This document shows, in pieces, positions 18,482 through 24,503 of a stretch of DNA of 64,000 nt. The number at the start of each line of letters is the position of its first letter. Position 1 is the first letter of the stretch. The DNA lies in assembly GCA_024704765.1 (NCBI GenBank), contig JAKMXF010000033.1, positions 744,001-808,000 on the forward strand, in the 5' to 3' direction. The stretch comes from Oopsacas minuta. Taxonomy: Eukaryota; Animalia; Porifera. The notes below the pieces were generated by a model, which worked only from the letters and a program-made list of their open reading frames with translations, did no database searches and was not told where the DNA came from. Both the position numbers and the translations under genes were made by a program.

Positions 18482-19738
18482 CTAGAAAGGTACTGAATCA
18501 ATCTGCTTCAGGATAGAGCACAGATGCTGAGCATCTTCTACAGTATTATACATAGCAAATGAAGCTCTAACCAGACCATCATCTACCTTTAATTTCATTT
18601 GATCCAGTAGACGAGTACAACAGAAATCACCACTCTTCAGTATTATCTTCAGTTCGTTAATCTTCTCAGATAATCTTTTGGGAGAAACGTATTTGTGTCT
18701 GAAACATACAATAGGTATTCTTCTGTTGTTAGAATTAGCTAGAGAGTATATCATATAGTTGGGGTTAGAATTTAGAAAAGTCATTAAGATCTTCTCTAAG
18801 GCTAACTCGTGTATAGTTATCTTGTCGAACATAGATTTTAGGGTCTCTCTAGTTAGCTCAGAATCCGGGGGTATTCCTTCTAGAGAATTGAACAGTTCTT
18901 TCATCCCGATAATGCCGGCCAGACCTTCAATCTGTAGAGTTCCGTATTCAAAGTGAGCTGGAGAATTTGCAGGAAGATTCACAAGGCCGATACGCGGTAA
19001 CTCATCAATAGCTGTATGCTTAGCGTACATACATGCAAAATGCGGACCATACATCTTATGAGTAGACACTACATAGAAGTCTACATCTAATAAAGCTGTG
19101 TCTACTAGCTTATGAGGAGCATATGCTACTCCGTCTACGAACACACGTGCATTTGGGGAATTTTCTCTGACACATTTTATGACAGCTGACAGATCAGAAA
19201 CAGCTCCTGTCATGTTACTAGCATGAGGTAACACTACGTAACGAGTTTTACTTGTGAGTAATTTCTGTAATTCTGTAATACAGCAGTAGTCATTGTCTCC
19301 GGTCAGGTTCCACTCTACTATTTTGACCCCTGTCTCACCCATATGTAGCCAGGGAGACACGTTAGCCTCGTGTGTAGCCGTGAATAATACAACTTCATCT
19401 CCTTTGATCATTTGTTTACTGATCACATTAACCATAGAGTATATCAGAGCAGTACAAGATGGTCCAAATAATATCCTCCCCTGTGGAGTAGCATTGAGGA
19501 TTATCTCCATAATCTTGCGTGCTTCTATGAGTGTATTCTCAGCACTCTTTGAGGGGCGAGAGGGATTACCGATGTTGACGTGATCATGTGTTAATTGGTG
19601 CATCATTCTAGATATGACAAATTTTGGAGGGAGTGTGCCTCCTGCATTCTCTAACATTAAGAGACCCTCTTTCTCTGACATAGGACCAATTGAGAAGCCA
19701 GGGAAAAATCCGCGGGCAGTTTTTGGATCGAAACTCAT
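18482..19738 (-). CDS. PLP-dependent class-V aminotransferase / cysteine desulfurase-like protein
   Basis: LENAGGTLPP, HEANVSPW, HASNMTG, VDGVAYAPH, STHKMYGPH (PLP lysine), FEYGT, GLVRASFAMYNT. Confidence 0.85.
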   Translation of the reverse strand: MSFDPKTARGFFPGFSIGPMSEKEGLLMLENAGGTLPPKFVISRMMHQLTHDHVNIGNPSRPSKSAENTLIEARKIMEIILNATPQGRILFGPSCTALIYSMVNVISKQMIKGDEVVLFTATHEANVSPWLHMGETGVKIVEWNLTGDNDYCCITELQKLLTSKTRYVVLPHASNMTGAVSDLSAVIKCVRENSPNARVFVDGVAYAPHKLVDTALLDVDFYVVSTHKMYGPHFACMYAKHTAIDELPRIGLVNLPANSPAHFEYGTLQIEGLAGIIGMKELFNSLEGIPPDSELTRETLKSMFDKITIHELALEKILMTFLNSNPNYMIYSLANSNNRRIPIVCFRHKYVSPKRLSEKINELKIILKSGDFCCTRLLDQMKLKVDDGLVRASFAMYNTVEDAQHLCSILKQIDSVPF

Positions 19739-19992
19739 CCTATTTTGTAATATCTACAAATCTTTCAATAAAGAGTAGAACTCGGTTAGTACGTATTTTT
19801 CTCAAAAACGGATTACCAATTCTTGTACTAATTGTATAGGAAAATATTTGGATAAGACGTGCTTCGGTTAGTAGGTACTATTTTTGTTTCCTGAGGGGAT
19901 ACGTATTATCCGAGTTCTTACTAAGAAAATGGGATATGTTAAGTTAATTATTTCTGACTCTAATTTATAGGATAATTGTGTGATAATTATCA

Positions 19993-22621
19993 CACAGTGG
20001 CACGGCATGTGGAAATAGGTGAAAATTTATAACCTCAAATTGCTTTATAATGTTGATATTTGAATTCAGCACCCCCACAAACCTCGAAAAACATTTAACA
20101 TCTCTACAATAGACTTTTCATTTATCTCCCACGTCTATTCCAATGAGAGCATAATTGAAATTCGAAAGATTGATTTATGGTTTCAATTTTTGGTCATGAT
20201 GTAATTTTGAATAATATGGATTCTCCACGTCAAATAACTGCTATTTATCGTATACCAATAGAAAGCTCTTATGTTGCTGAATAATAAATCACGTTAATCT
20301 TGGCTCCAATGAACAGATGGAATTTACTATTCTCATTTTAAACAAGCTTGTTTGTGCAAGTGCAATAAATAGAAATACGTTTCATTAAAACTCTAGTACT
20401 TTTTTTGCCTTCACTTGCGGAACTTTCCATTACGCTTTCCTAATAGCTCTTTTCGTCCTCTACAAAATACACTTTAAATTACGATGTCAGGAAGTGAAGT
20501 CATGGTGATTGAGTGTTTCTTCTAGCCAATCAACCTCTGTTTTCGAAGAAGACTTTAGTAAGCCCAACCGCAAGCCTCGGACGGAATTATCAACTAAAGG
20601 TCTTCGCAGCCGATTGTCCTCTTTACTAACACATCTTGAAAAAGTTGCTGTACAAGAGAATGTTTCCGGTAAAGAACTATCCTGTTACCTGATGATGCTA
20701 TATTCACAGACTGAATACGACTTTACTACTACCAAGTTCTGTAAAGAAATTATTGCTATGGAAAGCTTCGGTCCAGTCTGCAATAAATTAACCTCCGATA
20801 AAGCTGCGTTCTTGATGGATTCTTTAGAAATTGGAAAGAAGAAATACATCGATTTAAGACGATTATTGCTTTCAGATGTCCAGCTTCCAGGTTACAATCG
20901 ATTAGCTACCCATCGATCTCAAATTTGCTTGACTAGTGACATCTTCTCAGTTGATAGAGAACATCGGGTAGGCATTGCTGTATCTTACAAAAAGCTTCTG
21001 ACTCATACAGTAAACAGAATATTGACTGCTTCTGCCAATGAAATTCCAAGCGCCAGCAATCCTAAAAGATACGAATTTCAGATGGACTTGACGGTTCTGG
21101 CGCTTACCCAATTTATCAGCAGGCGACTCACTCCAATATATCAACAAAAAATTTTATTTTATTCGGATTTAAGGTGATTTCCATATCCGACATCGATAAC
21201 AAACTGATTTGTAAAAACCCTCTACCAAATTTTCCTTTCTCAATTAGACTCGTTGCGATACTAGCTCTACAGGAGAACGAAGACAATATTCGATATCTTA
21301 TGGATACACTAATCAATAAGGAGTCCACAGAGATAACGGTAAAGGGTTTAGAACTAACAAGCGGATTTTGTGAAGTTGAAATTCAACGTTCACAATTGGA
21401 TGGCAAAATGGCTAAGATTATTAGTGGAGCTGGGGGTGCATGTTACCAGTTCTGCACAGCGACATTCAAACAAATCCATGATCCGGATATCGTAAAAGAC
21501 GGTTTTCCAATTAATCGATCCATCACAGACCTCAAAGTAATATTTGATGAAGTTAACGAAGAGGAGTTTCTATCATTATCTTCTGACAACAGATTCAACG
21601 TTACACACAGACCAATATCTGACTTAGAAATCATACCCAGTTCGCCTTTGCATGCATATCTCCGATGTTTTGGCTGGTTTTTACATCTAATTAGCCATTT
21701 GCACGCAGGAGTATTTAAGTGGTCACCAACTTCTAAGAGAGTCTCAGATGCTAAAACTTTCGTTACAAGATTAATTAAGGACAATCTCAATATTATCATT
21801 GACATCCCTTCAACACAAGGTGGCACAACGACTACTGGTAATGTGGTAAGACGATGCTTGATAAGAAAGAATGACAACGATCAAGATTTCCTCTACTGGG
21901 TTTTGACAGTGATCCCGTCTGAGTTCAAGTCCCACATAATTGAAATTCACACATGCCTAGGAGCAATCCTACGCGTCTATAATAGTTGCAGAAGAGTGGA
22001 TACAGAAGAACTAGCGCTTGTTTGCAGTAATATCTACCAGTCAATTCTCTATGCATTTCCTTGGGCTAATGTTTCCCCGACGTTACACAAACTGTTAGCA
22101 CATGCACCGGAAATCATCTCAACGTTTAATGATGGACATGGGCTAGAGAACTTATCTGAAGAAGGACTAGAGGCTTCTAACGAATATATTCGGAGATACA
22201 GAGATCGTTTTGCTCGCAAGTTTTCATTTGAAGAAAATTTAAAGGATGTATTTGTTCGATTGATTTCTCACAGTGATCCCATGCTGTTAATGAATCGCAA
22301 GTTTTCTATTCCAAAGCCTCCATCTAGCCAAGGACTTAGAAGTAGCCAAGATATTTTAGTGAACACCCTTATTCGTGATCATGAAGATCATAATGATGAT
22401 TAAAAGTAACCTCTCAATCGATTAATAGAAAATTTGGGGAATTTTCACACCTCAGATAGGTGACAATGACGTCATAACTTTGTCACCTGAAGGGAGAGAG
22501 AAAAATTGAGTATACCATTCGATTCGTTGGGTCGAAAACCTATATGACAATAATACATTTTGAGGACCTATGTGCCATCAAAATGCCTATTTCCACATTC
22601 TGACCATTTCGTGCCACTGTG
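19993..22621 (+). mobile_element. RAG1/Transib-superfamily DNA transposon with both termini intact and a 5-bp TSD
   Basis: TATCA at 19988-19992 and 22622-22626. Left end CACAGTGGCACG-GC-ATGTGGAAATAGG (19993-20019). Right end, reverse complement, CACAGTGGCACG-AAATGGTCAGA-ATGTGGAAATAGG (22621-22586). Internal RAG1-core-like coding sequence. Confidence 0.93.
20509..22403 (+). pseudogene. RAG1-core/Transib-like DDE transposase, frameshifted near 21060-21066
   Basis: Frame 1: NBD-like KPNRKPRTELSTKGLRSRL, then LTSDKAAFLMDSLEIGKKKYIDLRR. Frame 2 (open from 21066): KIRISDGLDGSG (Asp 21090), SQLDGKM (Asp 21399), GACYQFC, SSPLHAYLR, TTTGNVVRRC, PTLHKLLAHAPEII, LSEEGLEASN (Glu 22170), DVFVRL...SDP. 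These match the RAG1 D600/D708/E962 and zinc-site layout. Confidence 0.9.
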
Positions 22622-22739
22622 TATCATAAGAGAAAACAGCGATGGACGAATTACTTAATTTGCAATGTATATGTCATGTTTGCACCAAATATAGAAATAA
22701 CAGTAGCTCCATATTACACAATATTTCCTAAAAACTATT

Positions 22740-24503
22740 TCAATTAACAGTGAATAGATTCTGCAAATGTATAGGAATCTTAGCTCTGAGTAGTGACAGA
22801 TGTTTCTGTATGCCTAATAACACAGGGTGTCCAGTAGGAAACAAATTAATTGCCTCATCAGAGACAGACTTAACTCTCAAATAAAAATCTACAATCTCTA
22901 CTTCTGTCTTTTCTCGTAACCAAAAGTTCACATCAACTTTACTTAACTTATCAAGATATATTCTATGTAAATTCAAATTAACTTCTCTTCTTCTCTCTTC
23001 AAACCAAATTCTGAAATTCGGTGACAATATAAAACTCCTATACAATCCTTCCCAGTTCCCTTTTATACCCACAATTTGTTGAGGGCCATTTGCTGCGAGA
23101 GTTTTAATAAAATCTTCAGTAATAAATTGCTTTAAAATTGGTGTAGTTAACCATGGATTAATGTCCCGACTGATAGGAATAAGAGAAACTAGGTATCTCT
23201 CTAAAGGGATCAGAAAATTAGAAGTTAAATCCTCAAAATATTTCTTGATAATAAGATTCTGTGCTTCAATAGGTCGTTTACCGTGTGACGTAGGAGGTTT
23301 ATCGATTAGTTTTATGAAACTCTTATCCTTCTGAGTGAAACATTTATATTTTGTGAATATTCCTGACTTAGATTCTTGTCCATTAGAATTGTTAGCCATG
23401 GTGCTATTCACCTTCCCTTCTATAAACTTAGGGTCTCCTATTCGTATTTGAGAGGGCCAATGTTCTAGAACTTTAGCAAAGTACGGGTTAGTCACTCCTA
23501 GAATTACACCAGGAGGTACATGAGTCTTCTTACTGTATTCAGAGAATGTAGTGTCGTGGACAGTGAAATAAGGTCTGTAATCCTCTGCGTATCTTAACGG
23601 GTGTATCAGTGATACCAAAGCCTGTACAAAGTCAGAACAGAGTTTAGGTGAAGTTCCCACAACAAATATAGGCTCGTTAGTCAGTACAAGCTCCCATAGC
23701 AAACCAGCTTGTGGTAATACACTGTGTAGTATGTATGTTAGGTTAAGCTCGTTAACTGAGGCTAGGGCAGTGATACCTGTGGGGAATTGGAATGTAGGGG
23801 CAGTGTCCTTTTTCTGCATTTTCGTTGGTAGTTTGATGGCTAGCACTTGTCCCATGACTGGAAGTTGTAACCAGGTGCTTGGCCTCATATCTTGCCAGTG
23901 ACAGATTTCTTGATAAATAACTTCCAAGAAATTGTTACCAACTTTGAATACCTCGGGTGCTACCTTACCCATGAGGGTAGAGAATAGATTAAAGAAAGGA
24001 AGCCGTGTTATCAGAATTACAGATTTCTGGAAATATCCACGACGAATACTCGCGTCTTTTGTCTGTCTGAAGTAAACAAATCCAAAATAATGATTGTTTT
24101 CCTGTCTGAGCACGAGAGGCAATGAAGAGGAGTAGGGTATTGGTTTAGGGTTACACCCCTCTCTCCTGATACCACTTGCAGGGATACGGAAATGGAACTG
24201 CACGTCTCCAATTAGGCCGGCGTTAGAATCAGGAAATGCCAGATAGCATATGTTAGTTTTCTCATCCTCAGATAGAGGAAACTCAGATGGATACACGGAC
24301 TCCAATGCCTGTCCTATCTCAAGGTCAAATGTTACTACACAAAAACAACATAGCCAGTTGCTAGACCTGCTGGATGCCATGTTAATTCTATTCCAATATT
24401 CTCTATCTGCTAATAATTGATCACATATTTGTATGAATATATATGTGAATACAACCAACACCAAATAAAATCTCAAGAATAGGAATACACAAAATGCAAC
24501 CAA
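22740..24503 (-). CDS. DENND6: DENN domain protein 6; probable true start MASSRSS near 24379
   Basis: WLCCFCVVTFDLEIGQALESVYP, NICYLAFPDSN, RRGYFQKSVIL, LWELVLTNEP, DYRPYFTVHD, ILGVTNPYF. Confidence 0.92.
   Translation of the reverse strand: MVAFCVFLFLRFYLVLVVFTYIFIQICDQLLADREYWNRINMASSRSSNWLCCFCVVTFDLEIGQALESVYPSEFPLSEDEKTNICYLAFPDSNAGLIGDVQFHFRIPASGIRREGCNPKPIPYSSSLPLVLRQENNHYFGFVYFRQTKDASIRRGYFQKSVILITRLPFFNLFSTLMGKVAPEVFKVGNNFLEVIYQEICHWQDMRPSTWLQLPVMGQVLAIKLPTKMQKKDTAPTFQFPTGITALASVNELNLTYILHSVLPQAGLLWELVLTNEPIFVVGTSPKLCSDFVQALVSLIHPLRYAEDYRPYFTVHDTTFSEYSKKTHVPPGVILGVTNPYFAKVLEHWPSQIRIGDPKFIEGKVNSTMANNSNGQESKSGIFTKYKCFTQKDKSFIKLIDKPPTSHGKRPIEAQNLIIKKYFEDLTSNFLIPLERYLVSLIPISRDINPWLTTPILKQFITEDFIKTLAANGPQQIVGIKGNWEGLYRSFILSPNFRIWFEERRREVNLNLHRIYLDKLSKVDVNFWLREKTEVEIVDFYLRVKSVSDEAINLFPTGHPVLLGIQKHLSLLRAKIPIHLQNLFTVN

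Follow-up and report, generated by a model that had tools for sequence, protein, structure and literature searches.

A decayed Transib-superfamily transposon copy in the glass sponge Oopsacas minuta and the constant 9-bp offset between the ends of its relatives

Positions 19993-22621 of the DNA analysed here, a 64-kb stretch of the Oopsacas minuta genome (assembly GCA_024704765.1, contig JAKMXF010000033.1, positions 744,001 to 808,000) that is called the window throughout, are very probably a dead copy, shortened by an internal deletion, of a cut-and-paste DNA transposon of the Transib superfamily, from a family that is multi-copy in this glass sponge. Transib transposons are mobile relatives thought to be the source of RAG1 and of the V(D)J recombination signals. 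The element is notable for one thing: its two ends differ by 9 bases, and this difference is strictly conserved in relatives with widely diverged transposases.

The copy is bounded by identical TATCA pentamers, and its two tips carry, in inverted orientation, the 12-nt block CACAGTGGCACG, which begins with the heptamer CACAGTG. Flanks and tips were read directly from the sequence and lie where an earlier note on this DNA, made from the letters alone, had placed them (Table 1). No third match to CACAGTGGCACG occurs in the window at one mismatch or fewer (0.08 expected). Farther in from each tip lies a second perfect inverted block of 13 nt, ATGTGGAAATAGG. An aminotransferase class-V gene and a DENN-domain gene border the ~370-bp spacer into which the element inserted. 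A tblastn search of the window returned no further Transib copies.

Between the ends lies the remnant of a RAG1-like transposase. A family profile built from 11 members (A1) and searched against PDB sequences matched HzTransib at 2.9e-73 (250 bits), BbRAG1L at 2.1e-27 (99 bits) and RAG1 at 3e-20 to 2e-16 (at most 75 bits), with the RAG1 alignments covering mouse residues 376-992, from the NBD through the C-terminal domain. HzTransib is the Helicoverpa zea Transib (PDB 6pqn, 6pqx and others; Hencken, 2012; Liu, 2019). The second reading-frame piece of the window copy alone matched HzTransib at 7.5e-15 and BbRAG1L at 4.7e-6, and the D/D/E and zinc motifs of the window align to the catalytic and zinc motifs of RAG1, BbRAG1L and HzTransib. 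The residues that the earlier note had picked out are among them: D 21090 in ISDGLDGSG, D 21399 in QLDGKMA, E 22170 in SEEGLEASN and the HxxxxH motif, which reads HKLLAH. Pfam searches with the two window pieces gave a sub-threshold RAG1 match (19.3 bits, cut-off 25) and nothing for the N-terminal piece; the PDB profile search and the fold comparison decided the matter.

Profile, tree and fold work relied on natural intact paralogues (P0037 and P0013) in place of any frame repair or consensus. An AlphaFold2 model of P0037, computed from a 52-row alignment, had a mean pLDDT (predicted local distance difference test score) of 90.5 and the RAG1-core fold. Foldseek comparison of this model gave template-modelling (TM) scores, by target, of 0.85 to the HzTransib hairpin-forming complex, 0.74 to BbRAG1L and 0.69-0.76 to RAG1 over up to ~650 columns, at a sequence identity to RAG1 of only ~17% in the structural alignment. 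The NBD-like N-terminal region that the earlier note had proposed was borne out by the profile alignment, which starts at mouse RAG1 residue 376, and by Foldseek alignments of ~640 columns to RAG1 chains of 598-623 residues, against 547-548 for chains labelled 'without NBD'. The protein of the full-length relatives comprises NBD-like helices, an RNase-H fold with the D-D-E residues, and a zinc site made by CxxC and HxxxxH. Profile and fold searches agree on the assignment of the element, with its CACAGTG termini and 5-bp duplication, to the RAG1/Transib family. Full-length transposases, as modelled in P0037, also have a confidently folded N-terminal domain of ~70 aa (residues 1-71; L006 2501-2713; pLDDT 87-97), upstream of the NBD-like helices and followed by a disordered linker; neither a Pfam match nor a convincing atlas match was found for this domain. 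The equivalent region has been deleted from the window copy at ~20495.

The window copy is heavily damaged. Relative to three full-length copies of its own subfamily (L001, L002 and L004), it has lost 363 bp at ~20495/20496, which takes away the transposase start codon and the N-terminal ~83-90 residues; beyond 20496, contigs of other copies continue with unlike sequence. Two smaller deletions, of 2 bp at ~20509/20510 and of 1 bp at ~21063-21069, interrupt what remains. The first zinc Cys has become Tyr (CYQFC), in a column that is Cys in every other aligned row shown and invariant in both family alignments, A1 and A2, and a His just past the first catalytic Asp, otherwise invariant, is also Tyr (GSGAYP in the window, GSGSHR elsewhere). 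These three deletions and two substitutions mark the copy as decayed and non-autonomous; it could not make a transposase and could at most be mobilised in trans. The single frameshift of the earlier note understates the damage, given that there is more than one frameshift, besides the 363-bp deletion and the C-to-Y and H-to-Y changes. An intact open reading frame (ORF) with all catalytic and zinc residues is found in L006 and L003 and is absent from the window copy.

Table 1. Features of the window element and its insertion site (window coordinates).
Feature	Position	Strand	Evidence or remark
Target-site duplication, left copy, TATCA	19988-19992		Identical to 22622-22626
Whole element, 2,629 bp, non-autonomous copy of a ~2,998-bp Transib	19993-22621	+	95.5-97.2% identity to L001/L002/L004 outside the 363-bp gap
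5' end block 1, heptamer CACAGTG + GCACG	19993-20004	+	Read directly; inverted-block and motif searches; end comparison
5' end block 2, ATGTGGAAATAGG, nt 15-27 from tip, behind a 2-nt gap	20007-20019	+	Inverted-repeat search; end comparison
Breakpoint of 363-bp internal deletion	20495-20496		blastn alignment leaps from L001 2888 to 3252; tblastn to P0001 begins at residue 101
Site of 2-bp deletion, frame break near remnant N-terminus	20509-20510		Other copies have 2 extra bases, AG/GG
Reading-frame piece 1, NRKPR...RSRLSSLLTHLEKVA: NBD-like helices, dimerisation/DNA-binding region, pre-RNase-H region	20542-21068	+	Translation; tblastn; profile alignment from RAG1 residue 376
1-bp deletion, frame shift just ahead of first catalytic Asp	21063-21069		tblastn frame switch at 21066-21069; other copies have +1 base at 21063 or 21067
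Reading-frame piece 2 to stop codon: RNase-H fold, ZnC2, retained ~65-aa segment, ZnH2, C-terminal domain, QDILVNTLI tail	21069-22403	+	444 stop-free codons
Catalytic Asp 1, GLDGSG	21090-21092	+	Alignment; invariant His three residues past the motif is Tyr in the window copy
Catalytic Asp 2, LDGKMA	21399-21401	+	Aligned to RAG1 D708 (DEKMV)
Tyr codon at first zinc Cys position of CxxC	21444-21446	+	CYQFC; second Cys kept, 21453-21455
HKLLAH, zinc His pair	22086-22103	+	Equivalent to RAG1 H937/H942
Catalytic Glu, SEEGLEASN	22170-22172	+	Aligned to RAG1 E962 (SEGNESGNK)
3' end block 2, ATGTGGAAATAGG, nt 24-36 from tip, behind an 11-nt gap with AAATGG	22586-22598	-	Inverted-repeat search; end comparison
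3' end block 1, CACAGTGGCACG	22610-22621	-	Contigs of other insertions diverge exactly after 22621
Target-site duplication, right copy, TATCA	22622-22626		Read directly

The element belongs to an abundant family. A search with the C-terminal reading frame returned dozens of O. minuta proteins, from near-identical down to 42% identity, with more than 30 O. minuta gene models matched, as well as proteins from ENA assemblies; the near-identical proteins are labelled as those of O. minuta, a hexactinellid, in keeping with the sponge host that the earlier note had surmised. Contig depth in the source sample reached 860-2,640 (summed) in most bins of the element against 83-86 in its flanks, a ratio of roughly 10-30x. 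In the O. minuta genome paper, the RepeatMasker class 'Other (Mirage, P-element, Transib)' accounts for 1,552 pieces and 1.22% of the genome, and Transib is not discussed (PMC10280926). The full-length copies of the window's own subfamily measure 2,998-2,999 bp and are 95.5-97.2% identical to the window copy; full-length relatives range from 2.9 to 3.4 kb, with intact ORFs of 684-724 aa in some lineages. The ORFs of L006 of O. minuta (P0037, 710 aa) and L003 (P0013, 684 aa) are intact and retain every catalytic and zinc residue, and L008 (654 aa), L009 (712 aa) and L010 (724 aa) translate to full-length query proteins, the residue columns having been checked for L008/P0029 and L009/P0030. An open frame is no proof of an active enzyme, since L005 (1426-4703, P0018), with perfect ends, GGGCC duplicated on either side and a 638-aa ORF free of interruptions, encodes Gly where the first catalytic Asp should stand (GLGRSG).

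Both ends were located in ten elements, the window copy and nine fetched members of the family, from four genome assemblies. Perfect 5-bp duplications flank eight of the ten, each of a different sequence: TATCA in the window copy, CCACA in L004, AGGTT in L003, GGGCC in L005, TAGAG in L006, CTTGA in L008, GGTAT in L009 and TAAAG in L010. In L002 the flanks agree at four of five positions (CTATC on the left, CTATT on the right), and in L001 they do not correspond (AGTAC and CCAAG). Further CACAGTG-ended copies with different 5-bp duplications, on whose existence the earlier note had staked its proposal, are therefore present. An eleventh element, L007 (10-2999, ERZ25072730, a 3x contig), was left out of these counts because its right end is off pattern, with the tip CACCGTG and a second block offset by ~4 rather than 9; this end may reflect damage or an assembly error.

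Comparison of the ends revealed a two-block layout with constant spacing. The heptamer CACAGTG stands at the tips of the window copy and of the nine other elements, with CACAATG at one 5' tip as the single exception. In all ten, the sub-terminal sequences of the 5' and 3' ends match best when shifted by exactly +9; the second block ends ~27 nt from the 5' tip and ~36 nt from the 3' tip. The sequence of this block varies by lineage, with ATGTGGAAATAGG, CCTGGAA(A/G)T(T/A)GG, ATGGGGAAATAGG, GGTAATAGG and AAAGAATAGG as examples, yet it agrees between both ends of each element, and the long spacer contains a semi-conserved AAATGG or AAAA motif. Because the block changes between lineages but stays matched within each element, its sequence and spacing appear to be under selection. 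Each end consists of a 12-nt tip block and then a 10-13-nt second block ending at nt 27 (5') or nt 36 (3'). Homology with HzTransib, ProtoRAG and RAG suggests a mechanism in which the transposase would bind both ends as a dimer and nick beside the CAC of the heptamer. Hairpins would then form on the flanking DNA, and the excised element would integrate with a 5-bp stagger; the window insertion duplicated TATCA. From conservation, we infer that the second block may be the binding site of the NBD-like region and that the fixed 9-bp offset would set one end apart from the other within the synaptic complex, in a 12/23-like arrangement.

The asymmetry could also be functionless, if 9 bp had been inserted into the 3' end of an ancestor and passed on to all descendants. 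This explanation is possible, if on the unlikely side; all ten elements fall in one clade, so a single ancestral event could account for their common offset. It must be set against an offset that stays at exactly 9 bp among lineages whose proteins are as little as 42% identical and whose spacers have diverged, the co-variation of the second blocks within elements, and the persistence of the AAATGG or AAAA motif in the long spacer. Moreover, Tao et al. (2022; PMC9435367) state that all Subgroup I Transibs have asymmetric ends; such ends also occur in RAGL elements (same paper), and certain insect Transibs have them as well (Kapitonov and Jurka, 2005; PMC1131882). That the 9-bp offset between the 27-nt and 36-nt ends reflects a pairing rule enforced by the transposase on its own, one short end with one long end, is put forward tentatively and is itself doubtful. 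If true, a proto-12/23 rule would be older than the capture of RAG2, and intact sponge elements such as L006/P0037 would provide a simple single-protein test system.

The ends invite comparison with vertebrate recombination signal sequences (RSSs), whose consensus heptamer is CACAGTG and whose recombinase has D/D/E, CxxC and HxxxxH positions that align with those of the sponge transposase. The short end of the sponge elements extends over 27 nt compared with 28 in a 12-RSS, the long end over 36 compared with 39 in a 23-RSS, and the offset is 9 rather than 11 bp. Vertebrate RSSs differ in having an A-rich nonamer where the sponge elements have a GGAAATAGG-like second block, and the vertebrate system differs in that the sponge element is mobile, multi-copy and without RAG2. 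Transib ends were described in 2005 as heptamer-spacer-nonamer, and in some insect families, namely Transib5, Transib2_AG and TransibN1-3_AG, an RSS12-like 5' end is combined with an RSS23-like 3' end (Kapitonov and Jurka, 2005; PMC1131882). The sponge elements likewise have the short end 5' and the long end 3' relative to the transposase gene; the insect families differ in their ~12/23 spacers and A-rich nonamer.

Placement among Transibs began from an exhaustive hidden Markov model (HMM) search, which found 6,761 representative clusters. The top matches fell into two groups, one aligned to the whole profile in one stretch and the other in two stretches that skip positions 365-408, as does HzTransib; BbRAG1L is aligned at these positions. 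A maximum-likelihood tree of 70 rows (IQ-TREE quick mode, midpoint root, branch support by the Shimodaira-Hasegawa-like approximate likelihood ratio test, SH-aLRT, only) separated the two groups with a support of 100. The two-stretch side is the HzTransib group, in which P0205 matches 6pqn at 8e-120. The other side contains all 16 rows with a C-terminal knuckle of the form C-x2-C...GH...C (CCGHC), and also a sponge-type clade of ten rows (support 100, stem 0.77) within which P0001, 96% identical to the window piece, is its sister. In this clade the knuckle is present in P0022, P0023 and P0029 as C-x2-C-GE-x-GH-x4-C, while a knuckle-less subclade (support 98) that includes all O. minuta lineages examined has a terminal QD-LVNSLI motif only. 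The sponge clade has 65-66 aa between CxxC and the His motif, and the HzTransib-like group has 29-32.

Tao et al. characterised Subgroup I Transibs by asymmetric ends, a retained alpha11-alpha12 segment in the zinc domain and a CTT1 tail, and placed the majority of earlier described Transibs, HzTransib included, in Subgroup II (Tao et al., 2022; PMC9435367). The family is assigned to the Subgroup I type on account of its asymmetric ends, its retained segment, which was mapped to alpha11-alpha12 by position rather than helix by helix, and the CCGHC tails of its sister lineages. Like the Subgroup I elements MleTransib of a ctenophore, HvuTransib-9 of Hydra and those of bacteria, it has a single gene, a CAC-heptamer tip, a 5-bp duplication and asymmetric bipartite ends, and it keeps the segment behind CxxC. 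It differs from them in its sponge host and in that the CCGHC 'CTT1' tail occurs here only in sister lineages, the O. minuta lineages having QD-LVNSLI in its stead; from its distribution in the alignments, the missing knuckle is read as an apparent secondary loss in O. minuta. HzTransib is the closest solved protein by both sequence and structure, and shares the D-D-E residues and C2H2 zinc site, the heptamer tip, the 5-bp duplication and the lack of a RAG2 partner. It differs in lying across the 100-supported split, in having ~35 aa fewer between CxxC and the His motif, and in its C-terminal tail.

Several observations weigh against the interpretation of the window element as a copy of a sponge Transib family of Subgroup I type. 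L001 (2384-5381), a full-length copy from the subfamily of the window element, lacks a target-site duplication, which could be due to recombination between copies or to rearrangement of a flank, and all four copies examined in this subfamily are broken, each differently. No contig joint across 19992/22627, which would mark an empty site, was found in the contigs of four runs, contigs being a weak test, and a search for transcripts yielded no evidence, returning only runs of unspecified kind from the assembly's own sample. The label 'sponge' for the clade is certain for its O. minuta members and less so for those from the four ENA assemblies (ERZ25072730, ERZ26869290, ERZ25069837 and ERZ20067936) and the coded runs. 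The tree held no named Subgroup I, RAG1L or RAG1 sequences, so the subgroup was assigned by shared traits and PDB E-values rather than by a rooted phylogeny, and the CCGHC tail, a Subgroup I trait, is missing from the window's subfamily.

The last two points, together with the midpoint rooting of the tree and the long stem of the sponge clade, would also suit a Transib outside Subgroup I, a separate lineage in which the long post-CxxC segment and the asymmetric ends are ancestral or convergent. Such a lineage is improbable: the three knuckle-bearing rows P0022, P0023 and P0029 sit in the same 100-supported clade, every row with a CCGHC tail lies on the sponge side of the 100-supported split, and the spacing from CxxC to the His motif agrees with that of the CCGHC-tail group.

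The earlier note had gone further and proposed a candidate basal relative of the RAG recombinase with its cis-signals preserved. An element of RAGL or ProtoRAG type, or a uniquely basal sister of RAG that stands closer to RAG1L than known Transibs do and keeps proto-RSS signals, would account for the heptamer identical to the RSS consensus, the NBD-like region, the RAG1-like length of the post-CxxC segment and the fold alignment to RAG1 over ~640 columns. ProtoRAG/BbRAG1L (PDB 6b40) and AanRAGL do share the heptamer tip, the 5-bp duplication, the RAG1-core fold and a similar post-CxxC length with the sponge elements. The ends of the pelagophyte AanRAGL consist of 13-bp and 10-bp blocks with 4/13-bp spacers (PMC9435367), and the end points of the second block computed from this layout, nt 27 and nt 36, are exactly those of the sponge elements. 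The proposal is nonetheless very improbable. The family profile scores 250 bits against HzTransib, 99 against BbRAG1L and 75 or fewer against RAG1, the second-block sequences of RAGL are unrelated, and its RAG2-like gene has no counterpart in the sponge elements. Each of the three elements checked whose ORF is intact (L003, L005 and L006) has one ORF of at least 100 aa, broken copies contain transposase pieces only, and elements of 2.9-3.4 kb leave no room for RAG2L; with a single ORF per checked element and hence no RAG2-like gene, the family is a Transib rather than a RAGL element. Its clade nests among many non-sponge Transib-like proteins with CCGHC tails, and all of its traits had already been attributed to Subgroup I Transibs (Tao et al., 2022; PMC9435367). 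A basal position was thus not upheld for what is an abundant single-gene Transib family, nor does the special status given to the element survive the match of its traits to the Transib branch of Tao et al. (2022; PMC9435367) and the report of 12/23-like ends in 2005 (PMC1131882).

A domesticated, RAG1-like host gene, for which the annotated gene model LOD99_14138 (P0002) might be taken as support, is ruled out by the lesions (three deletions, a changed zinc ligand and a changed invariant His) and the copy number, and is further contradicted by the terminal inverted repeats and target duplication that bound the element and by a gene model that bridges the frameshift only by an invented intron. 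P0002 (window 20692-22403) is evidently the gene model of the window locus, since it reproduces the window translation both before and after the frame break; the model skips sequence at the 21177 stop to bring the two frames together, and still includes frameshifted residues. Many other Transib remnants are likewise listed as host protein-coding genes in the public O. minuta annotation, with frameshifts bridged by invented introns, and some of these models carry misleading UniRef cluster names, e.g., 'Ras-GAP domain-containing protein'.

The Transib reading of the window element extends a documented branch of these transposons to a glass sponge. No mention of sponges or Porifera was found in Tao et al. 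and its supplements (PMC9435367), Yakovenko et al. (2021) or Martin et al. (2023), full-text searches that combined Transib with sponge terms returned nothing relevant, and the literature searched yielded no paper describing a Transib in Porifera. The current picture is unchanged, as single-gene Transibs with asymmetric ends, a retained ZnB segment and CCGHC tails were described in 2022 and the window copy is dead; asymmetric Transib ends, as a trait, are already published. The diverged natural elements with strictly conserved two-block, 9-bp-offset ends are useful for comparative work on where the 12/23 asymmetry came from.

Distribution beyond O. minuta seems uneven. The host genes that flank the insertion (19300-19770 and 22650-23300) are ~89% identical in contigs of organism D and ~97% identical in those of organism B. 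Copies of the transposon interior, 85-95% identical, were found in organisms C and D and almost none in organism B, so the family seems to be shared among related species with uneven presence. A short repeat lies at 19774-19918, ~70 bp upstream of the insertion, and contains inverted CGGTTAGTA(C/G)GTA motifs. It occurs once in the window, and the fetched loci lack it; its contig depth reaches ~16,000 and is very high in all four runs, three of which are from other organisms, and it may be a miniature inverted-repeat transposable element common to related sponges.

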